This document shows positions 4,513 through 50,565 of a stretch of DNA of 51,206 nt, piece after piece. A program made the translations under genes and the position numbers. The notes under the pieces were generated by a model. That model was not told the origin of the DNA, made no database searches, and was given only the letters and a program-made list of their open reading frames with translations. Each line of letters opens with the position of its first letter. The first letter of the stretch is position 1. Source of the stretch: Macrostomum lignano (taxonomy: Eukaryota); assembly GCA_002269645.1 (NCBI GenBank), contig NIVC01001972.1:1-51206 (forward strand), given 5' to 3'.

Positions 4513-5709
4513 ATGGGTAAACACAAGCAAAAAAAACATGTTCAGGAAGAGGACGCAGCAGAGCCAGTGGTTGATGCTGAGCCTCAGGAGGCTGAGGTCG
4601 AGGAAGCTGCCGCTGCCCCGATGGTGCCAAGGTTCGCAGGCCCCAGGTGAGTGATTTCTGTGACTTCTGTGTGCACTTACATCCTTTGTAGTCCACTTGG
4701 CTGCTCGCTCAACTTTTGGCCTTGCTTAGAAGATTTACATGCTTTTAACTCTCCACTCAGTTCCCTCAGCTGGTCACTACCCCTACCCTCAGTTCCCTCA
4801 GCTGGTCACTCACCCTCAGCTGGTCACTCACCCTCAGCTGGTCACTCACCCTCAGCTGGTCACCAACCCTCCTCAGCTGGTCACTCACCCTCAGCTGGTC
4901 ACCAACCCTCCTCAGCTGGTCACTCACCCTCAGCTGGTCACTCACCCTCAGCTGGTCACCAACCCTCCTCAGCGGGTCACTCACCCTCAGCTGGTCACTC
5001 ACCCTCAGCTGGTCACCAACCCTCCTCAGCGGGTCACTCACCCTCAGCTGGTCACTCATCCTCAGCTGGTCACTCACCCTCAGCTGGTCACCAACCCTCC
5101 TCAGCGGGTCACTCACCCTCAGCTGGTCACTCACCCTCAGCTGGTCACCAACCCTCCTCAGCGGGTCACTCACCCTCAGCTGGTCACTCACCCTCAGCTG
5201 GTCACTCACCCTCAGCTGGTCACCAACCCTCCTCAGCGGGTCACTCACCCTCAGCTGGTCACTCGCAAGCACACCAGATTCCCCAACCAAACTGGCAGGT
5301 GAAAATGTCCTACGAGGAGCAGCTGAACTACGTGACGCCCATAGCCAATCCAATGGCCCCAAAGAAGGTGAACAAAAAGCTGCTCAAACTTATCCGCAAA
5401 GCCAAACGCGGCAAGAAAGTTCACCAAGGCGTGAAACTCATTCCTAAGCTGATTGTAAAGAAGCGCCAATCTGGCATTGTGGTTATCGCTGGTGACGTCA
5501 CCCCGATCGATGTTGTCTCTCACCTGCCGTTGCTGCTGGAGGAGCACAGCGTACCTTATTGTTATTCGCCGTCTAAACGCGAAATTGGCGCCGCCTGCGG
5601 TTCCCGACGCGGCATCGCTCTGGTGTTCGTGCAGCGACACGACGATTTTGGCGACCTGTTCGACAAGATGCGCGACAAATTGCTTGAACTGCCGCTGCCC
5701 ATCTCCTAA
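4513..5709 (+). CDS. NHP2: H/ACA snoRNP subunit NHP2 (L7Ae/L30e family), 2 exons
   Basis: Exon 1 runs from ATG 4513 (MGKHKQKK...) to donor CAG|GTGAGT at 4646. Exon 2 is 5299-5709 (VKMSYEEQLNYVTPIANPMA...GVK...GIVVIAGDVTPIDVVSHLPLLLEEHSVPYCYSPSKREIGAACGSRR...LPLPIS*) and matches the NHP2 pattern recalled from human and fly. The best donor is one base out of phase with exon 2 (see findings). Confidence 0.88.
4780..5263. repeat. 18/21-bp intronic minisatellite in NHP2
   Basis: Alternating cactcaccctcagctggt and caccaaccctcctcagc(t/g)ggt units between the NHP2 donor and acceptor. Confidence 0.95.
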
Positions 5710-7164: not shown

Positions 7165-7548
7165 ATGTCCGACGAAGTGAATCCCAAAGCTTATCCGTTG
7201 GCTGACGCTGTGCTGACAGAGAAAATTCTCGAGCTGGTGAAACAGGCAGTCAGCTACAAGCAGATGAAGAAAGGCGCTAATGAAGCTACAAAAGCTCTGA
7301 ACAGAGGCCTAGCCGAGTTCATAGTGATGGCGGCTGATGCTGAGCCACTGGAGATTCTGCTGCACCTGCCGTTGCTATGCGAGGACAAAAATGTGCCGTA
7401 TGTGTTTGTCCGATCCAAGGTGAATCTGGGCAGGTGCTGCGGAGTCAAGCGGCCTGTCATCGCCTGCGCCGTACTGCAGAACGAAGGCTCGGAGCTGAAA
7501 CCGCTGATCAACTCGCTGCAACAGTCTATTGAGAAGCTGCTAATCTGA
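7165..7548 (+). CDS. SNU13: U4/U6 and box C/D snoRNP 15.5-kDa protein (SNU13/NHP2L1); CDS intronless
   Basis: The 127-aa [14 protein letters not shown]...[17 protein letters not shown]...[35 protein letters not shown]...[14 protein letters not shown] is near-identical to the conserved NHP2L1/Snu13 sequence. AATAAA at ~7680. Confidence 0.97.
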
Positions 7549-20500: not shown

Positions 20501-21957
20501 GAAGATGGCAACTCGCAACTCAACCATATAGCAGATTGGTCTAGACCTCAGCTTATTCTCTGTACAGCCTCTGAGTGCGTGTGCTCAGGAGCCATCGGTT
20601 AGTTAGTCAGTTAGCAATTGTGCATTGATTGGGGCTTTGGGAGCTGCCGCAGACAAAGGCGACTGTTTTGAAGGATGACGCAAGCAGCCTATTGATTGAT
20701 TCAGATACTTCTTTAGTTACAGGCACAGATACTAGAATAACTAGATGGGCCAAATTTACGCGTAAACTACTTTCAGTTCAGTAGTAAGTTAAACAGAAGC
20801 ATTTTAATGCATTTTTAAAGCCAAGACTCATTTATTGGCTCTTACCCCCAGTCTAAACCCTCCAACTGCGCCTTTCAACACTACCCCCCCCCTCCGCCCC
20901 GCCCCAATTTTTATTGCCTTTCTCGGAATTCCAGCCTAAATCTGCCATGTACATTTCAGAGGACTGGCTAATGTACATTATTTCTGAGCCAATTAGCAAG
21001 TTGTTTACGCCTGCAAGCTTGGGCTTCTAAACTTATCGAAGTCATTTCAGCTGCCTTTAATTCTATAAAATAGCGCATGAATTCTTTTTTGATACTGAAC
21101 TTAAATTAGAAATCTGTTTTACTAAGTATATGTGCCTTTAGTGGCCCATCCAGTTATTCTAGTAGCTGTGGTTACAGGCAGTAGGGCCCTGTGCACCCTA
21201 GCGCACCTTAAGCGACATTGTCCCACAGCCCATTCCGCCGACTCCCCCGAGCAGGCACACACTCACACAGGAGTGTACAGCGGCCCTAACTTTATTTATC
21301 GTTAGGCATGTACACTTCACTGTGCCTTGGGGGTTGGTCTTCAAGGCCGTTAATTGCACGAGCAGAGCCAAGCTGAGATTTTAATTTAGCGCCAATGTGA
21401 CTGCACTTAGGAATCGAGACTGGGCCGCTGGCACCTCAGAGCGCTTATTAACTGCTTACCAGGCCAACCAGCGTCCGCTCATGGTCTTCATCAGTTTCAG
21501 AGGCGCCATCGCTGGCAACGGCGCCAAGATCGGGGCCGAACGCCACCTCAGAGCAGGTGAGGTGGCTGTCGCCAAGCAGCCGGGCAACCCGCCGCCTAGC
21601 CAGCTCGGGCTTCTCTGCTGCACTGCCGTCAGCATTGCCTGGCGGATCCCGCAGGCCGAGCCGCCGGCCCAGCCGCAGCCAGAGCCCGTCGTCCTCGTCA
21701 ATACGCCGGCGCCATCGGCTGCAGACCAGCCGACAGTTTGCCAGATCGCCGGGCGCCAGCAGGCCAAGCAGGCGATCCTGCAGCTCAGGCGGCAGCCGGG
21801 TGCCGCACAGCGGATCGAGCAGGCGGCTCAGCCGGGCGGAGCAGCTGTTGAACAGCTGTTGAAGCCCGGCTATGGACAGCTGGTCAACCGCTGCCAGCGC
21901 CTGCGACAACAGTGCCGCATCGCTGTTGACGTCACTGGAGGCGTTGTGATTGATCAT
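14568..21957 (-). CDS. F-box protein with uncharacterised C-terminal region, 4 exons, ~600 aa
   Basis: Exons are 21957-21460, 18415-18068, 16779-16240 and 14984-14568. All are joined in phase 0 by canonical GT/AG sites (CTG|GTAAGC, ccag|ACG, CAG|GTAGGA, ccag|GTG, GAG|GTAGGT, ccag|GAC) with an open frame throughout. F-box motif: LPPELQDRLLGLLAPGDLANCRLVCSRWRRRIDEDDGLW. The first ATG is at 21957; the track start at 22008 is GTG. Confidence 0.8.
15030..15360. repeat. Cluster of gtgaccgtc motifs in both orientations
   Basis: Many (t)gtgaccgt / acggtcac copies, like subterminal repeats of a non-autonomous element. Confidence 0.4.
15390..16180. repeat. 27/28-bp intronic minisatellite (F-box intron 3)
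   Basis: ggacaattccctatcgattccaggaat unit, homogeneous on the right and degenerate on the left. Confidence 0.93.
16810..18012. repeat. Two abutting 20-bp arrays in F-box intron 2
   Basis: ggctcagct(a/t)ctcctgacat (~16810-17420) switches to gacactcctgacctacctaa (~17420-18012). The two share the core ctcctgac. Confidence 0.93.
18590..19790. repeat. 26-bp intronic minisatellite (F-box intron 1)
   Basis: aaaaaatccccat(c/t)gattctaggaat unit with period 26. Confidence 0.95.
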
Positions 21958-22282
21958 CCTTGCCCAGCTGCAACTGGAGCCGATCTGGGATGCTTGCAGT
22001 GCTGCCACTCGCAGAATCTAATTATTCGCGACTCACCCACTAGGAGATGAAGCGATTTTACTGGGGCATGGGATACCACATGCGCAACACCCAGCCGATC
22101 CAGTCAAACCGAAAGGCGTAGAACTAATTATATGACGAGGCATTTAGCCTTAATAATACTGTTAAAGCTATTCCTGCCGTTTACCCAGTCAATTTTTGCG
22201 GTTTTCTTTCATTGATAAGCCAAATTTTAGGTCAAAAAGTAAGTCGCACGGCCGGTGTAAACTAGGGGGTTGCGCATGTATG

Positions 22283-29009: not shown

Positions 29010-29309
29010 TCAAAAGTGCGTTATTGGCTCGGTCTGCAGGCCCGTCAGCTCTGGCTCCGGCTTTTCGCCCTTCTCAGTTGGCAACGGTTGGAACACGCGC
29101 AGGTGAATGAACTCCGAGTCGCCAATGCGCACCTTGGCAAAATAATTGGTGCCAGCAACTACCTGGCTGGCGAGCAGAACCGGTTCGAACTGGTCCACGG
29201 ATCGGCCTAGGCGGCTCTTGACCTCGGCTTGCATGGCTGTCAGTAGAGTAACTTCCTCCTTTGTAGGCTTCCTTGGTTCGCTAACTCCACCGCTGAGTTG
29301 TGTGGCCAT
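29010..29309 (-). CDS. Type-1 cystatin (stefin, cystatin A/B-like), 99 aa
   Basis: MATQLSGGVSE...SQVVAGTNYFAKVRIGDSEFIHLRVFQPLP...ITHF*. It has the N-terminal Gly, the QVVAG motif and the LP loop, and no signal peptide. Confidence 0.93.
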   Translation of the reverse strand: MATQLSGGVSEPRKPTKEEVTLLTAMQAEVKSRLGRSVDQFEPVLLASQVVAGTNYFAKVRIGDSEFIHLRVFQPLPTEKGEKPEPELTGLQTEPITHF

Positions 29310-34725: not shown

Positions 34726-35907
34726 ATTGTCTACTGTAGGGCGTATGCCGATTATTAACAGATAGTCCAATAGACGTGTCTAAGCTGATATCTAAATTTA
34801 CAAAAAGCAGACAATTGAAAAAATGGATTCAATAATGAAATTCTAAAAATAAGTGCATTAAATTATCAATACGAGTAAAACTCAAACTCAAAGCATTGTT
34901 CTCCAGACATGATTATTATTGGGTGTGAAACTGTACTATGACCCAGTGTATATTCCCACTGTATATTCTCAAAGCGTTAAAAAGGCTCAACTAAAAGTCC
35001 TAGGCAGATGGGATGGCGACAAGTTACTTTTATTAATATTCCAAGACTACTATTCCCCAGCAGACACAGGGCACAGGGAGATTACGAGCTGAAAGATTAG
35101 GGAATAAACTTTGTTTTACTCATAGTCCACCATAAAATTGATTGAAGAATAAAAATCAGCACAATCTGCCTGCCGGTTTTGGAAAATGAATTTAGTCAAG
35201 AGCTCCCCGACCCATCCAAGCGGTAAGTAAGACTTCCGTCTTCAAAGGTCTTAAGGTCTGGGGGGGGAGCTGCGGGAAAGCTAGAGCAAAGAGATGTTGC
35301 GTGTCTCAATGGTCTAGTTAGTTAAAGTCAATTAGCCGCTATTGAGGACCCCTGACGAAAATACTGCACATATCTTTAGCCCTGTGTGGGAGGTTGGAAG
35401 CCGAAACTATGCCAAAAGTTCCATATTTTGAAAATCACTTTGGATCCGATTCTATTCCTCATCAAGCACAGGGGCCGCGTGTTCTATCTTGGGGACATGT
35501 TGTCAAAAAATCCTTCTAAAGGAGATTAAAGAAGAAGACAAAGAGAAGCCGAGTCAAAGCAAAGAGCGAGGATATTCCGAGACGGTCGCACTTCCGCTGC
35601 CCCAGAGTGTAGGGACAATCTCCATCTACTTATACCCCTGATTAGATCCGCAATTCTTCTTGGGTTCCTGGAGTTCTCGAATGTGGCAAGTCCTGGGCGA
35701 GTCCGAAATCGAATAATACGCCAATTCCCTGGGCGGCTCCTCAAAGGCTCGAATGGAATGAACGCCTGTTCAGTGCATGCAGAAGAAATGTATGACAGTT
35801 CTTTTAGATAATACTATATACACAGTTGAGCCCTATCAGTGCGTTTCACGAATGTTTGTTGCTTGTACATACAAGCTAGTAAAAGTACAATTGCACAAGC
35901 TGCAAAA

Positions 35908-36483
35908 CAACAACAACAACAACAACAGGGCGCGCTTCAAGGCCAGGTCGCGGATGAACGCCACGCCGCCGGCCGAATCCGGAACGCTGGCGTCAGCCAG
36001 CAGGCAGTCGACGAAACGCCGAGTGCGCGCCTGCCCCCGCCGGTAGGGTGTCTGCAGCGTTAGCAGCAGCACCTCTTGCACCGGCTCTGGGCAGTCCGAC
36101 TCGGCGTGGATGATGTGGCCTGCCAGCTGGAGTCACCGACGGCGCAACAGGTCGCTTGGACGGACCAGGTGATACAAAGCCGGGTTGGTCACTCGCTCGT
36201 AGCCGATCTTGAAGGCGGCGCGCAGCAGGCTAGCATGCACCGCATCAACTTTTTGCTCGAGCGACTCCGTCAGCGTCCAGGTCTCGGCGTTGTACAGCAG
36301 GACGGTCTCGATCACCGCCTGGAACAACGCCGGCGCCGCCCTCTGGCGGTCAGGTAAGGCCTCGGACTGCAGGACTGCCCTCACAGAACGAAAGGCAGCC
36401 CAGGCAAGCCCGCGGCGACGCCGCAAATCCTCGCGGACGCCGGGAACCAGACCGCCGAGGTAGACGAACTGCTGACAACGCGG
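35908..36483 (-). mobile_element. 5'-truncated RTE-clade non-LTR retrotransposon (3' end of ORF)
   Basis: FVYLGG...RRRRGLAWAAF...LFQAVIETVLLYNAETWTL...RRR*LQLAGHII is the typical region C-terminal to the RT domain in RTE elements, with one in-frame stop. It has a (TTG)n tail and a TSD aagctg(c/t)aaaa at 35897-35907 and 36484-36494. Confidence 0.8.
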
Positions 36484-37033
36484 AAGCTGTAAAAAGAACG
36501 ATTGTAACCACGAGGCATGTGGAGCTGTAGGCATGTGGATGATGTGGCGGGCCAGCTGGAGTGCTACAGCTGGTCGCTTGAACTGATCAGGCGATTGATC
36601 AGGACTGAGTATGCGTCACACTACCCAGAAGATAAAATTATTTCTAATACATTATACAGCGCGAAACAAATGTCTGTCCTAGTAAGCACTAGCGCATTTA
36701 ATTCGGCGAAGAACAATAGTGGAAGATGTGGCGTCTGCTTGCTCACTGTCAATAAGAACAGGGAGAGACAAGTGCTGGCGTACTTGCTTTGCAAATACTC
36801 GAATTAGGAATCTTACTCCGCGCAAGGGAGAAACAGATAGCATCCGACGTGTCGTATTATCAGAGCTGCAAAAACCTTCATAAGTGCAACTCAATGCACT
36901 CATCTTGAACCCTTTGCACGCAGAAACAATGGGTCTACATACTTCCCACAGCCCTTTTTCTCTTTAAATAACTTAGGAACTCATTTCTTCCTGCTTGCGA
37001 AGCTGATGCTGCAATCCTTATCTAACCCTTGTC

Positions 37034-39206: not shown

Positions 39207-40056
39207 AAAAAATTTGCTAGCATCCGAAAGGTCATTAAGGTCAGCTCGCAGACAAACCAACTCTTAGTTGCTTTTTAGCGCTTGAGGAATGGAACTAAAT
39301 GTTTACTATGCCTTAATGATCAGAGTTTAAATCACTACAAAGTACGTCATTCACGCGACGGTATCAGCTTTATATTTTTGTACTTATTAAGGTTTAAAAA
39401 ACCTTGTAATTTCGTGTTTACAATAGATTAATCGGGTATTACGTATTTTCAATACTGGTTGGTAATACATGGGATTCTTTTATGTTCTCAGCACAGACAG
39501 GTATTTTACAAGCAAAATAGTTTTGCCGATTCTTTCTACTCAGTAGGCAAATCTTCCGTCTCGAAATCAGTCTCTATGCGCGGCGTGCTGCAGAATACAG
39601 ACTGGCGGATTAACCCCGCTATCTGGCAGTCTGCGACCCGCGCACCTGACGTTATTTAATGCCGCTAATCCCACTTGTCAGCCGGTCCGACGCCCTCGCC
39701 TACTTCCAAATGAAATTTAGAAATTGATTTTTTGTCGAGTCAGCGACTGTGAAATCAGACTCGGGTCAGGTTGAGCCAGAAAAGCTTCTTTGAGCGTCAC
39801 CGGGAGGCCACTCGAATAGGTGCGTTGTCTCAATTATTCCCCATCCCTGAGAGGCCGCCCAATCCCAAAGCGCTGGCAACCCATCCAGGCTTGACAATCC
39901 TTATTGGTTGTGCCTTGAAGCCAGCCCCTCTCGCCTCTGTGGGGATAAAACAGATCGACTTGGCTGCAATCCGACCCCCTCTTCGCTAGATCATCAGTCC
40001 CCTATATCCCTTAACGCACAGATTCATCCGGTAGAGACTCGACCTCGGCAGCAAAA

Positions 40057-40867
40057 ATGCAATGCAGCGTTCTGGCGCCAATGCTGGCGCTTCTGATGGC
40101 GGCGCTTATCTGTGCATCGTCCACTCGAGCTGACGTGAGTCACTTCTGACCTCTCACTTTTGTCTTTAATATTCTTACCAGTGAATGCCAAGTTGCACCG
40201 GTTCGATACTGCCTGATCACCTTTGTAGTCGCTTCATCACCACGGTGCGTCAGACCAGGAGCTTCAAGATCAAACCGAAAAGAGGGCCTACTTTGATCCG
40301 ATGGGATACGGCAAGAGGGCCTACTTTGATCCCATGGGATACGGCAAGAAGAAGAGGGCCTACTTCGATCCCATGGGATACGGCAAGAAGAAGAGGGCCT
40401 ACTTTGATCCCATGGGATACGGCAAGAAGAAGAGGGCCTACTTCGATCCCATGGGATACGGCAAGAAGAAGAGGGCCTACTTTGATCCCATGGGATACGG
40501 CAAGAAGAAGAGGGCCTACTTCGATCCCATCGGATACGGCAAGAAGAAGAGGGCCTACTTCGATCCCATGGGATACGGCAAGAAGAAGAGGGCCTACTTC
40601 GATCCCATGGGATACGGCAAGAAGAAGAGGGCCTACTTTGATCCCATGGGATACGGAAAGAAGAAGAGGGCCTACTTTGATCCCATGGGATACGGAAAGA
40701 AGAAGAGGGCTTACTTTGATCCCATGGGATACGGAAAGAAGAAGAGGGCCTACTTTGATCCCATGGGATACGGCAAGAAGAAGAGGGCTTACTTTGATCC
40801 CATGGGATACGGAAAGAAGAAGAGGGCCTACTTTGATCCCATGGGATACGGCAAGCGCAGTACTTAG
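40057..40867 (+). CDS. Neuropeptide precursor: signal peptide plus 15 x AYFDP(M/I)GY-amide, 2 exons, 238 aa
   Basis: Exon 1 (40057-40134) is MQCSVLAPMLALLMAALICASSTRAD, ending GAC|GTGAGT. The intron is 94 nt and ends ctttgtag|. Exon 2 (40229-40867) is SLHHHGASDQELQDQTEKR-[AYFDPMGYG-KR or -KKKR]n-AYFDPMGYG-KRST*. Dibasic/tetrabasic cleavage sites and a Gly amide donor are present, and repeat variation is almost entirely synonymous. Confidence 0.9.
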
Positions 40868-41800
40868 CAAAATCATCATTTGAGACAGCAAATTTGAATT
40901 TATTCAGCTTGTCAACCAACAAATACAAAAATGTCCAGATATTGACTTCGTCCTTGAAACTGTTAGAAGCGAGGAGCGACGAGCCGTGAAAGACTCTGAC
41001 TCGTCTTTGTTTCTGGCTCAACAAAGACTTCTCTAAGTTGCGCCACAGTTTTCTAGCTCTTTGTTCAGAGTGTATTAAACCAATGAAAGATTTCGAAATA
41101 TAAAAAAACAACAAGGCACTTTTATGTAGCACAAATAAGCCTTGATGGCTTGATCCTCAAGTGTGCACTGTAAAAATGCAATTAAGGATTCAGTTAGTTA
41201 ATCATGGCATTGATGTCGTTTGCATATGCCTGACGATTAGACAGTTAGATTAACATTCTATGCTACTCAAGACGAGTAGTATTTCAACAACTGTGTTAAA
41301 AGTATCGACAAGAAGCTTATCTCGTATTAATATTTTACTGAGCAGCATCAGAGATTCACAAGTAACCAAATCTTGCACGAAAAAGCAGAAAGTCGTTCCG
41401 TTTCGAAGATTTTTTGAAGAAACTTGATGAAGCCAAATATGTAGCAATTTCTTGACTTGAAATCGCTTTCAACTTTTCTTCTTTGGCTTTGTCTTTTCTG
41501 TGCGTCTTTCTGCCAGCTGCACGAAGTGTTTTCGCCTTTGTGTCCTCAGTTGATGTCGCCCTTTCTGGGTCCATCTTTAGGCAATCCTGGCATTATGGGT
41601 ATTAAAGGCTTAGAGTGGGCTGAAACACGCCAGTTTGTCTCTAAGGTGCGGAACAGAGAGGCTAAACAGGATTACCTATTGCCAATCAAAATGATTGAGA
41701 CTTCCCTGCATGTCTGACAGTAACCTGGCGGACAACTGCTTGAAGTGCGATGGTTCATTAATCCAGAAATTAATGAATTTCTCTCTAGTTTTAGTTCCTC

Positions 41801-42395
<595 letters not shown>

Positions 42396-42614
42396 CACTT
42401 ATTTCCTGTTTCTCTAAGATGTCTTCCCATTAGCATAAAGCATACTACTATGAAGTAGCACAGAGCATGCTCCCCTAACTTGTTACAGAGCCAGTTTTAA
42501 CCACCCAATGGAATCAAGAAACCGCCTACTCTATTGCTAGCAGCTATAAGACCCCAATCAACTCAAACCCAGGCACTCCAGCTTCCCGAAGCCCAGCTCA
42601 CTCCCAGCCCCAAG

Positions 42615-45600
42615 ATGGACAAGCCCGGCATTCGCTACCAGAAGCTGCGCGAGCGAGCGCAGAAACGCGACAGCGTGGACTCACGACAGTCAAGCGACGC
42701 GAGCTCGGGCAGTCAGACCCAACTGCTCGGAGCCGCCACGGCCGTCGGAGCTTCGGGAACGTCGACAGTGGAGACAGCAGTCACGGAACAACAGCAGCAG
42801 CGAATCCAGGTGCCCTCGGTTCAGGTTGAGTCAGCGGGCGCCTCGTCCGCCAGCCTGCGCTCCCCAGTAGCCGGGGGCGGCGCGGCCTCCCAGTCTCCAG
42901 TCGCTTCATCATCTTCATCTCCTTCTGGAGGCTCGAACTCAGGACCTATGCAGGACCAACAGCCGCCACAGCCGCCGCCGCCGCCGCCGCCACTTCAACA
43001 GGAGGACAGCGTCCGCTCGGAGGAGGGCACCGTGGCTACCGAAACTACAACCGACGAGGCGGGCGGAGGCGGCCGCGTGCTGCAGCACTGCTGCAGGGGC
43101 GAGTGGGCCAATGTGGAGGCGCAGCTGAGAAAAGGCGATTTCCATCCGTGGGAGCTGACAGAGGCTGAGGAGGTTGGATGGGAATAATTGTTGCTGTTGT
43201 CATTATTGGTATCGTGTCTCATAGATTTTGGCTCATAGGTCCTGGCTAATAGGTCATAGCTAGTCCATCGAAAGTCATACATAGTCATAAGTCATACTCA
43301 CAAATCTTGGCTCATAGATTAGCTCATAGATCGTAGCTTATAGGTCATAGTTCATCGATCGTCGCTCATCTACCGCAGCTCATAGATGGTGGCTCATAGC
43401 TCGTGGCTCATAAATCGTGGCTCATAAATCGTGGCTCATAAATCGTGGCTCATAGATCGTGGCTCATAAACCATCGCTCATAGGTCGTAGCTCATCGATC
43501 GTAGCTCAACGATCATGGCTCATAAAACATTGTTCATAACTCATACGAGCGTAGCTCATAGATCGAAGCCCATAGATCGTCGCTCATAAACCATTGCTCA
43601 TAGCTCATAGCTCATAAATCAGAGCTCATCAATGACAGCCCAGATATCATAGCAGCACTCTTAACACAGCGACTCCATGAAATGTTTTTTACGGCGAGAA
43701 ATGAAACAGCCGTTTGTTTTAATGCTTCTCCACCAACAACTCGATGGACTATCAAAAATGAATTTCAGGGCAGCGGCGAGACGCCCCTCATGATGGCCTG
43801 CCGCGACAACAAACTGGTGATTGTCGACAGACTGCTCGAGAGCGGCGCCGGAGTTTTCGAGAAATGCTCGGTCAGCTCTACTGATTCTGCACTCTCCCTC
43901 TCGCACTCTCCCTCTCGCACTCTCCCTCTCGCACTCTCCCTCTCGCACTCTCCCTCTCGCACTCTCCCTCTCGCACTCTCCCTCTCGCACTCTCCCTCTC
44001 GCACTCTCCCTCTCGCACTCTCCCTCTCGCACTCTCCCTCTCGCACTCTCCCTCTCGCACTCTCCCTCTCGCACTCTCCCTCTCGCACTCTCCCTCTCGC
44101 ACTCTCCCTCTCGCACTCTCCCTCTCGCACTCTCCATCTCGCACTCTCCCTCTCGCACTCTCCCTCTCGCACTCTCCATCTCGCACTCTCCCTCTCGCAC
44201 TCTCCATCTCGCACTCTCCCTCTCGCACTCTCCCTCTCGCACTCTCCCTCTCGCACTCTCCCTCTCGCACTCTCCCTCTCGCACTCTCCCTCTCGCACTC
44301 TCCCTCTCGCACTCTCCCTCTCGCACTCTCCCTCTCGCACTCTCCCTCTCGCACTCTCCCTCTCGCACTCTCCATCTCGCACTCTCCCTCTCGCACTCTC
44401 CCTCTCGCACTCTCCATTTCTCACTCTCCATTTCGCACTCTCATTTCACACTCTCATTTCACACTCTCCATCTCGCACTCTCCCTCTCGCACTCTCCCTC
44501 TCGCACTCTCCCTCTCGCACTCTCCCTCTCGCACTCTCCCTCTCGCACTCTCCCTCTCGCACTCTCCATCTCGCACTCTCCCTCTCGCACTCTCCCTCTC
44601 GCACTCTCCCTCTCGCACTCTCCCTCTCGCACTCTCCATTTCTCACTCTCCATTTCGCACTCTCATTTCACACTCTCATTTCACACTCTCCATCTCGCAC
44701 TCTCCCTCTCGCACTCTCCATCTCGCACTCTCCATCTCGCGCTCTCCCTCTCGCACTCTCCCTCTCGCACTCTCCCTCTCGCACTCTCCCTCTCGCACTC
44801 TCCCTCTCGCACTCTCCCTCTCGCACTCTCCCTCTCGCACTCTCCCTCTCGCACTCTCCCTCTCGCACTCTCCCTCTCGCACTCTCCCTCTCGCACTCTC
44901 CCTCTCGCACTCTCCATTTCTCACTCTCCATTTCGCACTCTCATTTCACACTCTCATTTCACACTCTCCATCTCGCACTCTCCCTCTCGCACTCTCCCTC
45001 TCGCACTCTCCATTTCTCACTCTCCATTTCGCACTCTCATTTCACACTCTCATTTCACACTCTCCATCTCGCACTCTCCCTCTCGCACTCTCCATCTCGC
45101 ACTCTCCATCTCGTACTCTCCATCTCGCACTCTCCATCTCGTACTCTCCATCTCGCACTTTCCATCTGGCACTCCTTGAACTCAGTTTAAGACAAATTTT
45201 AATTGGCCCATGAGGTTGGTTTTCGCTGCTGATACCCTGTCTCACTGGGAACGGAATCTTTACAACAAAAACCAATTTCTTCGATAGAAAAAATGTCTAC
45301 CCTTAGCACAACAAAGGTTCTGGTCCCCATTCAAATTGCAACTCCCCCAGTGTCCCGTTGCCATTGACAACCCAGCGCACACACAACAATAATGCATTAT
45401 AAATCTCTGTAGCACAGTCAAATAAAGTAGAGTGATGAGGTAGGCTAGGCAACATATAAAGCCAGTTCATAAGGTTTCTAGGAATTGGTCCGCTGGGATT
45501 TGAAGCCAAGGGCTTATAGAGAGCAAGGCTTGTGCACCGGATGCTCCGTGAGTTGCTGCCTTGGCACTGAATGGTAAAGGTAACAGAATTTATGGGTGCT

Positions 45601-48600
45601 TTGAGAAAGGCATTGTGTGCGTTTCTCAATAGCTGTATTTCTTTTCAATTTAGTTCTACAAGAGCCGGTTCGCATCCATCACTTTTTTTAATTCTTTCAG
45701 ATTCTCAGATTCTAAGCTGGTTTTCACAATAGTAGAAGCTATTTATTTGGACCCATGATGCTTGGGATCTGTACGTGACATCATTGATAACTTTAGCACT
45801 CATTTAAGCTGTTTTCTTTCAAATAAGGGGTTGTAGTCTAATGGTCGGACTCAGGACTTGAAAGGTCGGGGGTTCGATTCCCGATCCCACTCGGAACAAT
45901 TTGAGTCTTTGAGCAAGATATATGACTCTGCATTGCTTCAGTTCACCCAGCTGTAAAATGGGTGCCAGCATTAGCTGGGGTAATTGTGTGTTGGCGTACT
46001 GAAGTCCTTGGACTGAACAGCCGTACGCAGCCTTCAGACGCGCCGCGCAATAGCTGCGGCTGAGCTGTCGGTTGCACATCTGTCTATTGGGGCAGGCGTA
46101 ATCAATTATTACCATTTATTATTAAACATTATTTCTTTAAAAATATAAAATAATAAAAATACCCAAAATTTTCGAAGTACTGCATCACGAGCGCAATCTC
46201 TCTGTCACTGTATTTCAGGACGGTCGAACGGCCCTGCACTTTGCTGGCCAATACGCCAAGGACGACATCATCAAGCTGCTGCTGGCCAGGAAAGCCGACC
46301 CAAATCAGACTGGAGGGGTGAGAGATCGCAACACATTACCGCCAGGAGCTTTAAAGATTACCGGTTTACATTTGCGGGTCAAATATTGCTCAAATCAATG
46401 TGCAGTTAATTCAGATCCACAGTTGCCACAAATAAGGACCAACCTTAGGGTGTACACTGCCTGACAGAGGGTGTACACTGCCTGACAGAGGGTGTACACT
46501 GCCTGACAGAGGGTGTACACTGCCTGACAGAGGGTGTACACTGCCTGACAGAGGGTGTACACTGCCTGACAGAGGGTGTACACTGCCTGACAGAGGGTGT
46601 ACACTGCCTGACAGAGGGTGTACACTGCCTGACAGAGGTGTACACTGCCTGACAGTGAGAAAGTTAGGCCCGCTGTACACTCTGAGTGAGTACACGCCTG
46701 CTTACATATCCTTGTACATGTGCGTTCTCAGAGGTTAGCGGAATGGATATAAATGATTGCCAGCTGCTACAACTCTTATTGTAGTCTGCTCTGATTGGAC
46801 GCGGGACAGGCGGATGAGTTGTGACGTCATTCTCTAAATTATAGTCCCTCTCTACCCTTCCTTGTCGCCTATTGGCTAGCAAGCATTCCAATCGAAAGGT
46901 CATACCCAGCGCCATCCCAATACTGCCCACCGCAGCCCCTGGAGCAGACGTCACTGCACTACGCCTGCCAGAGGTCCCAGTCCGCACTGCCGGCCGTATT
47001 GACCCTCATAAAGGTGACGAAAAACGGCCGATTGGTGACAGATAAGGTAAAAAACATATCTAATCTTAAGGTAGAATTGTTGGTAAAAACATGATATAAA
47101 AGTGCCCATCCACCCCAGCCTGGCAACATCCCACTGTACTACGCGGTGGACAGCGGCAACGCCTTAGTGATGAAGGAGCTGCTGGACCGGGACACGGATG
47201 TGCAGGTGCGCTGGCGCCACGGGGCGTCTGGCAACACCGCCCTGCACGTGGCGGCCGGCAAGCGCGACCTCGAGATGGTGAAGATTCTGTGCGACTCTGG
47301 GGCCGACATCAATGCGCAGAATGTGAGGTTGCTGGGATAGATATGATGGAGTTTTTCAGGCATCTAAGCATTTAAGATGCACTGTACTAGCGACAAAAAT
47401 TACCGATGTAACAAGTGCAGACTACGCGCTCCTTTGTAGAATGCCGGTCAGACTCCGCTCCACATTAGCGCCAATGAAGGCGACGAGGCTGTGGTGCGGT
47501 TCCTGCACTCCAACAAGGCCGATGCCAGCATTCTGGACAAGGTGCTGCTGTTTATACGTTTGTTTAGGGCTGGGGAACTAGTTCGAAGGGAAGAGGCGTA
47601 TAGAGGATCCAGGTCTCTCCGTTGGGCTTTATCTGGAGTCCGAAATTGACGCTAAGTCCACAAGCTCCATCCCAGCTCCATCCCAGCTCCATGCAAGCTC
47701 CATGCAAGCTCCATGCAAGCTCCATGCAATCTCCATCCCAGCTCCATCCCAGCTCCATCCCAGCTCCATCCAAGCTCCATTCCAGCTCCATCCCAGCTCC
47801 ATCCCAGCAACATTCCAGCTCCATTCCAACTCCATCTCAGCTCCATCCCAGCTCCATCCAAGCTCCATCCCAGCTCCATCCCAGCACCATCCCAGCTCCA
47901 TCCCAGCTCCATCCCAGCTCCATCCAAGATCCATTCCAGCTCCATCCCAGCTCCATCCCAGCAACATTCCAGCTCCATTCCAACTCCATCCCAGCTCCAT
48001 CCCAGCTCCATCCAAGCTCCATCCCAGCTCCATCCCAGCTCCATCCAAGCTCCATCCCAGCTCCATCCCAGCTTCATCCCAGCTCCATCCAAGCTCCATT
48101 CCAGCTCCATCCCAGCTCCATCCCAGCAACATTCCAGCTCCATTCCAACTCCATCCCAGCTCCATCCCAGCTCCATCCCAGCTCCATTCCAGCTCCATTC
48201 CAGCTCCATTCCAACTCCATTCCAACTCCATCCCAGCTCCATCCCAGCTCCATCCCAGCTTCATCCCAGCTCCATTCCAGCTCCATCCAAGCTCCATTCC
48301 AGCTCCATCCCAGGTCCATTCCAACTCCATTCCAACTCCATCCCAGCTCCATCCCAGCTCCATTCCAGCTCCATCCCAGCTCCATCCCAGCAACATTCCA
48401 GCTCCATTCCAGCTCCATTCCAGCTCCATCCCAGCTCCATCCCAGCTCCATTCCAGCTCCATTCCAGCTCCATCCCAGCAACATTCCAGCTCCATTCCAG
48501 CTCAATTTTAGCTCCCACTAAGCTCTGTCCAAGGCTTTTGCTAGAGCCTGAAGTTGACGCTCAGAGGCTCATATTCTAGCGCAAAATTTGGCATATGATT

Positions 48601-50510
48601 TTGAGTGAGTCAGAGCTTTAGTTTCCAACCGAAAGAATACAGTTAACCCAGTTGGCGGTGTCCTGATTGAAGAAGTGAAACTTCTAGATAAGATCGATAA
48701 ATCCTCTTGGACTCTTTTCCAACGCCCCTACAGCAAGACCGCAGCCCTCTGCACATGGCGGCCGAACGTGGCCAGACAAAAATAGTGGAGCTGCTAATTG
48801 ACAAGTTCAAATGCAACGTGCTGGCCCGCACCAAGGACGGCAGCACTTTGATGCACGTGACCTCACAGTCGGGATTCCCCGAGACTACCATGGCCTTTCT
48901 TCGACGCGGAGTGCCGCTGCACATGCCGAACAAGAGCGGCGGAGTCTGCCTGCACGCGGCGGCCAAAAGCGGTCACGCCAGCGTTGTCCGCAGCCTCCTG
49001 GAGAAGGGCGCCAACGTGAACGCGGTGACGAAGGACCGGCTGACTGCGCTGCATGAAGCCGTGGCCAGGGGCCACCCGGCCGTAGTGGAAACCCTACTCG
49101 GCTTCGGGCGCAGGTTCGTGCTGGAGCACTACAATTAGTCCGTGAAGTGCAATTAGCCTGTGGAATGCAATTAGTCTGTGGAATGCAATTAGTCTGTGGA
49201 ATGCAATTAGTCTGTGGAGTGCAATTAGCCTGTGGAGTGCAATTAGCCTATGGAATGCAATTAGTCTGTGGAATGCAATTAGTCTGTGGAGTGCAATTAG
49301 CCAGTGGAGTGCAATTAGCCTGTGGAGTTCAATTAGTCTGTGGAATGCAATTAGTCTGTGGAGTGCAATTAGCCTGTGGAGTTCAATTAGTCTGTGGAAT
49401 GCAATTAGTCTGTGGAATGCAATTAGTCTGTGGAATGCAATTAGTCTGTGGAGTGCAATTAGCCTGTGGAGTTCAATTAGTCTGTGGAATGCAATTAGTC
49501 TGTGGAGTGCAATTAGCCTGTGGAGTGCAATTAGCCTATGGAATGCAATTAGTCTGTGGAATGCAATTAGTCTGTGGAGTGCAATTGGTCTGTGGAATGC
49601 AATTAGTCTCTGGAGTGAAATGGGTTTGGACTATGAATAATAATAATAATAAATAATTGATTACACCTGCCCCAATTGGGCCAGATGCGCAACTGACAGC
49701 TCAGCCGCAGCTATTGCGCGGCGCATCTGAAGGCTGCGTACGGCTGTTCAGTCCAAGGACTGGGGGGTCGCCACACACCCTCAATTACCCCAGCTAATGC
49801 TGGCACCCATTTTACAGCTGGGTGAACTGACGTCGAAAATTTAATATAACAAGAACCATACAGTAGTTTGTGAAACCCCCACCCCTCAATAACACAAATT
49901 GTTCCGAGTGGGATCGGGAATCGAACCCTCGACCTTTAAGTCGGAGTCCGACGCTCTAACCACTAGGTTACACCGCCCTATAAAGCACCACAAAAAGTCA
50001 GGATTGTCCTTATTAAACAAAGTGTATTTGAGATGGAATTTTCAGTACTAGTTGTCAAGGTTGGAAAACGGCCTCCGGGGCTTGAATGGTTGCTATCAGT
50101 GTCAAACTGTGGTAGGTCTCAAATGTCCGGAGAGCCAACGATAAGGCTTGTTGTACGATCTGCTCCCATGAATTCTAACTCGCCGAGTGTGTGCATGACT
50201 GACAATGACAAGGTCAGGGGTTAATGTACATCTTGTGTGAGCGCGGCCTGAGTACGTATTCCCCAACTACCTCATTACTCAACAGGTGGACGTCAAGGGC
50301 GGCGAAGACGAAGATACTCCGCTGCATCTGGCGGCTCGGACCAGCGGCGGCGAGCGCTGCGCCGAGATGCTGCTGAAGAGCGGCGCCAACGTCAACAAGG
50401 CCAACCGGCTGGGCCAGACGCCGCTGCACACGGCGGCCAAAGGCGGCAACGTCGACATGCTGCTGGCGCTGCTGGCCGAGGCCGGCGACCCGACTCGCGT
50501 CTGCCAGCAG
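42615..50510 (+). CDS. nompC: TRPN/NompC mechanosensitive channel, N-terminal ankyrin region (partial; continues beyond window)
   Basis: Exons are 42615-43172, 43769-43870, 46219-46317, 46936-47046, 47119-47322, 47440-47541, 48734-49113 (or 49117) and 50286-50510, giving 12 ankyrin repeats. Segments such as LIDKFK...RTKDGSTLMH, LHMPNKSG, PAVVETLLGFG, V.VKGG...TPLHLAAR and CAEMLLKSGA match NompC repeats as I recall them from Drosophila. The TRP pore is not in the window. Confidence 0.85.
43290..43640. repeat. ~14-bp degenerate intronic repeat
   Basis: gctcata(g/a)atcgtg-like units in TRPN intron 1. Confidence 0.8.
43885..45170. repeat. 14-bp intronic minisatellite
   Basis: ctctcgcactctcc units, with a recurring ttcacactctca variant block near 44420, 44640, 44920 and 45010. 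Confidence 0.95.
45827..46123 (+). mobile_element. tRNA-derived CORE-SINE, full length
   Basis: ggggttgtagtctaatggt (A box), ggttcgattcc (B box), CORE segment, shared 3' domain and ttatt tail. Confidence 0.88.
46449..46655. repeat. 21-bp intronic repeat, ~10 copies
   Basis: gggtgtacactgcctgacaga with period 21. Confidence 0.93.
47655..48505. repeat. 11-bp intronic minisatellite
   Basis: tccat(c/t)ccagc units in TRPN intron 6. Confidence 0.93.
49147..49617. repeat. 18-bp intronic minisatellite
   Basis: gcaattag(t/c)ctgtgga(a/g)t units in TRPN intron 7. Confidence 0.93.
49636..49978 (-). mobile_element. tRNA-derived CORE-SINE, antisense copy with internal replacement
   Basis: Reverse complement of the SINE with a (TTA)n tail. 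~49831-49893 is unrelated sequence in place of part of the CORE. Confidence 0.85.
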
Positions 50511-50565
50511 GTGAGAATTTCCTCCGACTCTGAGACTGATCCTTCGTTTAGTCTTTAGTCTATAT

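Follow-up and report, generated by a model that had tools for sequence, protein, structure and literature searches.

We analysed a stretch of 51,206 bp from the free-living flatworm Macrostomum lignano (Macrostomorpha), a member of the Platyhelminthes, the phylum to which the FDPI neuropeptide family belongs. The stretch is contig NIVC01001972.1 of assembly GCA_002269645.1 in its full length and is referred to below as the window. On its forward strand, a short exon encoding a hydrophobic N-terminus is followed by a second exon that contains a 39-bp tandem repeat (Table 1). We have high confidence that this gene is real, and it very likely represents a two-exon gene for a 238-amino-acid (aa) preproneuropeptide of the flatworm FDPI family (spp-15/spp-16, npp-26).

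Exons, splice junction and the 39-bp array

Table 1. Features of the probable neuropeptide gene in the window (the sign ^ marks a junction)
Feature	Position	Strand	Remarks
Exon 1, coding part	40057-40134	+	translates to MQCSVLAPMLALLMAALICASSTRAD, signal-peptide-like; same residues in UniProt model A0A1I8ITX1
Intron, phase 0	40135-40228 (94 nt)	+	donor GAC^GTGAGT, acceptor CACCTTTGTAG^TCG (TTTGTAG end); cleanly absent from A0A1I8ITX1 (...SSTRAD^SLHHHG...)
Exon 2, whole coding part	40229-40867	+	translates to SLHHHGASDQELQDQTEKR, then 15 peptide units, then ST-stop
Start of exon 2: acidic, His-rich spacer SLHHHGASDQELQDQTE, then first KR cleavage site	40229-40285	+	
Fifteen tandem peptide units	40286-40858	+	AYFDPMGYG x14 and AYFDPIGYG x1, each with Gly then KR/KKKR
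Unit 7, lone Ile variant	40514-40540	+	AYFDPIGYG (ATC for ATG); has the family's canonical FDPI core
C-terminal Ser-Thr and TAG stop	40859-40867 (stop 40865-40867)	+	
In-frame TAA upstream of the start codon	40012-40014	+	
ATTAAA, candidate polyadenylation signal	41074-41079	+	about 210 nt past the stop; putative

Translation of exon 1 joined to exon 2 yields a product of 238 aa. All 15 units are bounded on both sides by KR or KKKR and end in G-K-[KR], that is, with a C-terminal Gly directly before a basic site; unit 1 is followed by KR, each of units 2-14 by KKKR, and unit 15 by KR-ST-stop. A preliminary description of this DNA had proposed 14 AYFDPMGYG and one AYFDPIGYG between KR or KKKR in a 238-aa product, preceded by a signal-peptide exon (40057-40134) spliced in phase 0 (40134^40229). 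The repeat content and product length were reproduced by translation, and the two other proposals also hold: the junction is canonical GT-AG and recurs exactly in an independent database model, A0A1I8ITX1, in which the first exon is found as well.

If left unspliced, the frame of exon 1 reads past the donor to a stop at 40147. The TAG of the acceptor is itself the upstream in-frame stop for exon 2, whose frame therefore begins precisely at the acceptor. Among all stop-free GT..AG pairs joining both frames, only the pair 40135-40228 combines the consensus donor GTGAGT with a pyrimidine-rich acceptor. No other start codon lies between the TAA at 40012 and the ATG at 40057, which is therefore the first start and has A at -3. 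The hydrophobic core of exon 1, MLALLMAALICA, reaches a Kyte-Doolittle 12-aa maximum of 2.77, compared with 2.22 and 2.57 for the spp-15 and npp-26 signal peptides, respectively, and is accompanied by small residues at -3/-1 that suit signal peptidase (ASS/TRA).

The array was delimited by Tandem Repeats Finder at 40280-40855, with a period of 39, 14.9 copies and 95% matches. When each array of the window with a period divisible by three was aligned to its own consensus, the 39-bp array differed from its unit consensus by 13 substitutions in five columns, and all 13, hence all five columns, occupy third codon positions in the peptide frame. Four of these columns are synonymous (GCC/GCT, TTT/TTC, CCG/CCC, GGC/GGA) and the fifth, ATG/ATC, changes M to I. 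The sole indel is a loss of 6 nt, which yields the short first spacer. Six control arrays from the same window (period a multiple of 3) show substitutions over all phases, frameshifting indels of 1, 4, 5 or 7 nt, or both. The preliminary description had called the variation synonymous and unlike that of nearby arrays; the restriction to third positions and the difference from the controls stand, but one of the five sites is M/I and the variation is thus not purely synonymous. Under a uniform null, five of five variable columns would fall on position 3 with a chance of about 0.4%; since only five sites are involved, this codon-phase bias is supportive and not decisive by itself. The near identity of the units indicates that the array was recently homogenised or expanded via unequal crossing-over, during which selection seems to have allowed only in-frame, mostly synonymous change.

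These data bear directly on whether the array could be non-coding, a minisatellite like its neighbours with several frames that happen to be open, next to a coincidental upstream "exon". The window does invite such a reading: tandem arrays with periods of 4-136 bp make up about 36% of the contig, several of them occupying introns of genes, and many give long open reading frames (ORFs) in several frames, as does the 39-bp array itself, whose other frames are open for 232, 213 and 330 aa. However, in contrast to the control arrays, it varies at third codon positions only, and its single indel is in-frame. Its frame also starts right at a canonical acceptor that lies 94 nt past a signal-peptide ORF with a GTGAGT donor, its peptide matches a known peptide family, and two paralogues retain the peptide despite other spacers and signal peptides. 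A minisatellite origin is therefore strongly disfavoured and, in our view, hardly credible. The finding of a real gene inside an apparent minisatellite argues for checking arrays of period 3n for codon-phase bias before they are masked.

Database models and paralogues in M. lignano

An exhaustive HMMER search of a library of 1.84 billion proteins, with the exon-2 translation as query, retrieved the UniProt model A0A1I8ITX1 from M. lignano, which bears the automatic name "Allatostatin" and is 100% identical to the window product over the signal peptide, the spacer and the first four repeats. It contains ...GRDSTSAAKMQCSVLAPMLALLMAALICASSTRADSLHHHGASDQELQDQTEKRAYFDPMGYGKR..., in which the translated 5' untranslated region (window positions 40030-40056) leads into exon 1, and exon 1 is joined to exon 2 at the predicted junction. 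UniRef labels the matching neuropeptide segment Macrostomum lignano. Residues 1-323 of this model map antisense to an apparent fragment of a long interspersed nuclear element (LINE) at 35.5-36.5 kb of the window, with 66-87% identity, and past the fourth repeat it continues in out-of-frame sequence. Given this transposon-derived 5' part and the out-of-frame tail after four repeats, A0A1I8ITX1 is a fused and truncated model. The preliminary description had considered the gene hidden as a repeat. Indeed, it looks like a minisatellite, its models are flawed and, as had also been pointed out, a plain ATG-ORF track begins mid-repeat (40301-40867), but the gene is not fully hidden, for A0A1I8ITX1 holds part of it.

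An ORF resembling a LINE reverse-transcriptase fragment lies at 36133-36534 (-), together with 35549-36489 (+); it has no match in Pfam, and a similar piece is found upstream in the M. lignano model A0A1I8IE52. These UniProt models fuse transposon sequence onto the neuropeptide genes. Just 5' of 40030, A0A1I8ITX1 diverges from the window (...KLLHP^GRDS...), and a 1-nt difference, ccgg versus ccggg, would account for its frame. A good acceptor (ccttaacgcacag^) is present at 40021, upstream of the ATG at 40057, and the region 40022-40030 might be explained by trans-splicing, by an indel in the assembly or by a non-coding exon further upstream.

The same search retrieved A0A1I8IE52, one of two paralogues. 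In its C-terminal 243 aa, MASRNFSTSPLLLLLLLLLGCTAFA-AESRTDIKDASSDGEEVNAEKR is followed by 15 copies of AYFDPINYG with KKR spacers. This part is 70% identical to the window product and has the same copy number. Frameshifting variation in unit length had been named beforehand as a sign against a gene; here the difference is in-frame, each spacer of A0A1I8IE52 being shorter by one residue (one codon). The third gene, seen in A0A1I8HWB0 and A0A1I8I4A1, encodes MPARLLLAAACLLAVCLPAAEG..., then KKR, then at least 11 copies of QVYFDPIDN between RKR; since these copies have no Gly, the peptide is presumably not amidated. A0A1I8I4A1 is a 1002-aa automatic model in which 11 copies of QVYFDPIDN are fused to sequence named as a G protein-coupled receptor (GPCR) family-1 domain, probably a merged neighbouring gene. 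For all three M. lignano genes, the only models found are fused or truncated automatic ones with unrelated names.

The two paralogues share species and architecture with the window gene and differ from it in having their own signal peptides and spacers, and KKR or RKR in place of KKKR. Across the three genes, YFDP[IM] and its basic flanks have thus been kept despite the divergence of signal peptides and spacers, a signature of selection on the excised peptide. A conserved peptide core amid a diverged signal peptide and spacer is usual for neuropeptide precursors.

This conservation also informs a second alternative, namely that the product is secreted but stays uncut and serves a structural role, for example as a Tyr-, Lys- and Gly-rich eggshell, cement or adhesive protein cross-linked via 3,4-dihydroxyphenylalanine and Lys. 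The residues encoded by exon 2 (42 K, 31 G, 30 Y and 17 D among 212) would suit such a role, as would the signal peptide, the highly homogenised repeat and a likeness to tanned flatworm eggshell and mussel-type adhesive proteins. Nevertheless, the paralogous QVYFDPIDN has a single Tyr and neither Gly nor Lys in the peptide, yet it retains YFDPI and the basic flanks. Moreover, every unit of the window gene follows the grammar of a preprohormone (basic pair, 8-residue peptide, Gly, basic pair), and its 8-residue core matches peptides that mass spectrometry (MS) shows to be excised in planarians and schistosomes. We regard a structural role as highly improbable.

Other searches with this product were less informative. 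Exact look-up of the 188-aa ATG-ORF returned no record, and a word-indexed protein search with the 238-aa product gave two weak bacterial matches only, which we discarded. Such a word-indexed negative is misleading for a repetitive query, since A0A1I8ITX1 and A0A1I8IE52 were both missed despite being in the collection, where the exhaustive search found them. A six-frame motif scan of the window and four compared loci (L001-L004) did not find a second FDP-type gene.

Several domain labels were rejected. The name Allatostatin-A attached to A0A1I8ITX1 does not apply, as the FGL motif is absent (a C-terminal Y/F-x-F-G-L-amide would be expected), and Pfam Allatostatin gave no match at E <= 1 with either the window product or A0A1I8ITX1. 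The Tarsal-less/Pri model (Pfam PF22856, Tal-1A_2A) scored 31.5 bits against a cut-off of 27, as the sum of 15 weak repeats with no single significant stretch. Tarsal-less/Pri peptides are cytoplasmic, 11-32 aa long, encoded by their own small ORFs, carry LDPTGxY and have no signal peptide, whereas the units described here lie between basic sites inside one secretory ORF. Likewise, the Pfam OmdA match of A0A1I8IE52 is a summed-repeat artefact. Pfam holds no model for the FDPI family, and a scan for bacterial promoters and terminators is irrelevant to a metazoan gene.

Kinship with flatworm peptides and predicted processing

We assign the window gene to a known family, the FDPI neuropeptides of flatworms, as a new member that has not yet been named; it is not a new kind of gene. 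Its 15 copies of A-Y-F-D-P-[M/I]-G-Y fit the family pattern x-[YH]-F-D-P-I-x-[FY]. In planarians, FDPIQFamide and FDPIMFamide (from spp-15) and QFDPIMY and FDPIMYamide (from spp-16) have been identified by MS/MS or by mass match, with expression in cephalic ganglia and ventral nerve cords (Collins et al. 2010, PMC2953531), in agreement with the FDPI peptides of spp-15/16 that the preliminary description had named. The schistosome npp-26 peptides are SYFDPILF, SYFDPIIY, EHFDPIIY and NFDPILF (PMC2953531); SYFDPIIY, SYFDPILF and related peptides were later confirmed by MS in S. mansoni cercariae (PMC9495596). Our exhaustive search retrieved trematode precursors at E = 4e-6 to 6e-4, values inflated by repeat-versus-repeat statistics and surpassed by those of unrelated repeat proteins. 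They include CAH8827012.1 from Trichobilharzia regenti (S/TYFDPIMF, TYFDPIMY), TGZ67796.1 from Opisthorchis felineus (A[HY]FDPIMF) and KAF5404909.1 from Paragonimus heterotremus (SHFDPIMF). The pairwise comparison of the window product with the Trichobilharzia precursor gave a likewise repeat-inflated E = 5e-18.

With Smed-spp-15 (BK007013), which encodes a signal peptide, a spacer, eight FDPIQF-G-KR and one FDPIMF-G-R (PMC2953531), the window gene shares the signal peptide, the short spacer and back-to-back, Gly-extended copies of an FDP core; in the planarian, the amides were detected by MS and the gene is expressed in the nervous system. Unlike the Macrostomum peptide, that of spp-15 has six residues, an Ile core and a terminal F, and no N-terminal A-Y; its spacers are KR only, and its copies are nine as opposed to 15. 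Smed-spp-16 (BK007042) has the FDP-x-x-Y ending, and one of its copies (QFDPIMYG-K) has Gly followed by a basic residue, but its three to four copies are mostly non-amidated, carry an N-terminal pyroGlu and are separated by long unrelated spacers. Schistosoma npp-26 (Smp_071050) and the trematode precursors come closest in length, with a signal peptide, dibasic flanks and octapeptides of the form x-[YH]-F-D-P-I-x-[FY] (SYFDPIIY, TYFDPIMY, AYFDPIMF). They differ in having only 4-6 copies and a hydrophobic residue (I, L or M) at position 7, where Macrostomum has Gly; as they have no C-terminal Gly, the trematode peptides end as free acids. The Macrostomum octapeptide therefore unites a trait of spp-15, the Gly with its predicted amidation, with the length of npp-26. 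YFDPMGY, FDPMGY, YFDPIN and YFDPID were not found in a flatworm context in the literature searched, whose coverage is partial, so that the Macrostomum peptide may have been published earlier.

Several points weigh against our reading of the gene as an FDPI preproneuropeptide. Only one of the 15 units has the family's Ile, the other 14 having Met. The planarian and trematode relatives have KR, RKR or KRR but no tetrabasic KKKR, and the schistosome peptides are non-amidated, so that amidation is no constant of the family. E-values for repetitive queries are inflated, and clearly unrelated repeat proteins also fall below 1e-10. The array was homogenised recently and offers only five variable columns as evidence from variation, and our call of a signal peptide is a heuristic one, based on hydrophobicity and the -3/-1 rule. 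Furthermore, entries of the type of A0A1I8ITX1 presumably stem from the MAKER annotation of an earlier PacBio assembly, and the junction in that model may be partly ab initio; because of this presumed origin, we treat it as an independent prediction, possibly transcript-guided, and not as proof of splicing. More generally, exon-intron structure, repeat layout, codon constraint, paralogues and motif match all come from sequence and database evidence, and amidation, processing and neuronal expression of the Macrostomum peptide are predictions.

Based on the standard regulated secretory pathway, the N-terminal 21-25 residues would target the precursor co-translationally to the endoplasmic reticulum and then be removed. 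In secretory granules, the precursor would be cleaved behind each KR or KKKR by a prohormone convertase; an essential PC2 homologue (RNA815_2403.2), expressed in the nervous system, is known from M. lignano (PMC4490696). A carboxypeptidase E-type enzyme would then strip the basic residues, and peptidylglycine alpha-amidating monooxygenase would turn the exposed Gly into an amide. Each precursor would thereby yield 14 AYFDPMGY-NH2 (predicted [M+H]+ 962.408) and one AYFDPIGY-NH2 (944.451); for the paralogue A0A1I8IE52, the corresponding amide AYFDPINY-NH2 would have [M+H]+ 1001.473. More speculatively, the peptides would be released as signals and might act on a GPCR.

The precursor might also be processed to AYFDPMGY outside neurons, in gland, epidermal or reproductive cells, and furnish pheromone, defence or seminal-fluid peptides, with constitutive-pathway convertases of the furin type acting on KKKR. 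Such a source is conceivable because the KKKR sites could also serve furin-type enzymes: they approach the basic-X-basic-Arg site and, as noted, set the window gene apart from its planarian and trematode relatives. In the planarian, both spp-15 and spp-16 mark unidentified sub-epidermal cells and the pharynx in addition to neurons; for Smed-spp-15, expression was described in the cephalic ganglia and nerve cords as well as in the pharynx and in sub-epidermal cells (PMC2953531). Nevertheless, all characterised relatives are expressed in the cephalic ganglia and nerve cords, and the Gly-basic amidation signal is typical of neuropeptides of the regulated pathway. We thus consider a non-neuronal peptide unlikely, and a neuropeptide remains our preferred reading.

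Our exhaustive search also retrieved multi-copy precursors in which a dibasic site precedes each unit and the unit itself begins with [FLM]-D-[PS]-[IL]-G; their E-values, 6e-15 to 4e-4, are repeat-inflated. Among these are precursors of the pedal peptide/orcokinin (PP/OK) type, namely Rhodnius orcokinin B (AEC32484.1, FLDPLGGGHLI), a protein from Elysia (KAK3754513.1, PFDPLGSGFIS) and precursors of the MLDPIGSSLL/FMDPIGSSLI type. The F-D-P-[IM]-G of Macrostomum resembles the PP/OK core x-[FL]-D-x-[IL]-G, which directly follows the cleavage site, but it is preceded by A-Y. In addition, PP/OK peptides have 11-20 residues, with a further Gly/Ser-rich hydrophobic half, and are usually non-amidated, whereas the Macrostomum peptide has eight residues and ends at G-Y. 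Since FDPIG and FDPMG share the start of bilaterian PP/OK/MLD peptides, an origin of the flatworm FDPI family from the PP/OK family is possible. Specifically, we tentatively propose, while holding it to be doubtful, that the FDPI family (spp-15/16, npp-26) might have split off from the ancient PP/OK system through truncation, with amidation acquired secondarily, and that the early-branching Macrostomum keeps the Gly after FDP[I/M]. Caution is in order because the peptide has only eight residues, repeat-versus-repeat E-values are unreliable and the comparison is one of sequences alone. We did not find this link in the literature searched. If true, it would give an orphan flatworm family an ancestry and candidate receptors.

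Three unnamed precursors from transcriptome-like contigs of Logan, ENA and JGI (P0039, P0050 and P0079) contain 4-6 copies of ALPFDSMNYG-KR, QLPFETLNYG-KR or RLPYEVMGFG-KR and share a final ...(I/L)P(I/F)DGYIMG. Their pattern suggests an amidated x-L-P-F-[DE]-x-x-N-Y family with possible kinship to the FDP peptides.

The FDPI family and the flawed automatic UniProt model were known already, and the gene reveals no new kind of system. What it adds is a well-defined, high-copy member of the family, together with two paralogues, from a genetically tractable and early-branching model flatworm, in which peptide function and receptors could be tested via RNA interference, transgenesis and peptidomics. 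A free-living model for the FDPI family also has some practical value, because its parasite npp-26 relatives are discussed as anthelmintic leads.

Neighbouring genes and collinear contigs

Two further stretches, NIVC01002886.1:8527-28826 (L002) and NIVC01001364.1:142576-162875 (L003), are collinear with the window at 19-39.7 kb, with about 92-98% identity and differing array lengths. They represent homeologous or allelic copies. The compared stretches end 0.3-3 kb short of the neuropeptide gene: L003 stops at the window equivalent of 39730, leaving about 330 bp to the ATG, and L002 stops inside a 50-bp array.

Downstream of the neuropeptide gene, a multi-exon ankyrin-repeat gene extends over 42612-50558 (+), with exons at about 43.7, 47.15-47.34, 48.7-49.1 and 50.29-50.5 kb, minisatellite-filled introns and a possible Ser/Pro/Gln-rich first exon at 42612-43187. 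The collection contained no close called protein for it (best 63-68% identity), and it appears to be unannotated. Elsewhere in the window, two adjacent genes of the L7Ae family were found, one NHP2-like at 4651-5709 (+) and the other SNU13-like, intronless and encoding 127 aa, at 7165-7548 (+); an 18-bp array lies directly 5' of the NHP2-like ORF and in frame with it. A cystatin-domain gene at 29010-29309 (-), encoding 99 aa, is the same on each of the three contigs; the SNU13-like and cystatin products both have exact protein matches on contigs of GCA_002269645.1. For an F-box gene at 21448-22008 (-), the called protein has 605-606 aa on two of the contigs and 174 aa on the third.

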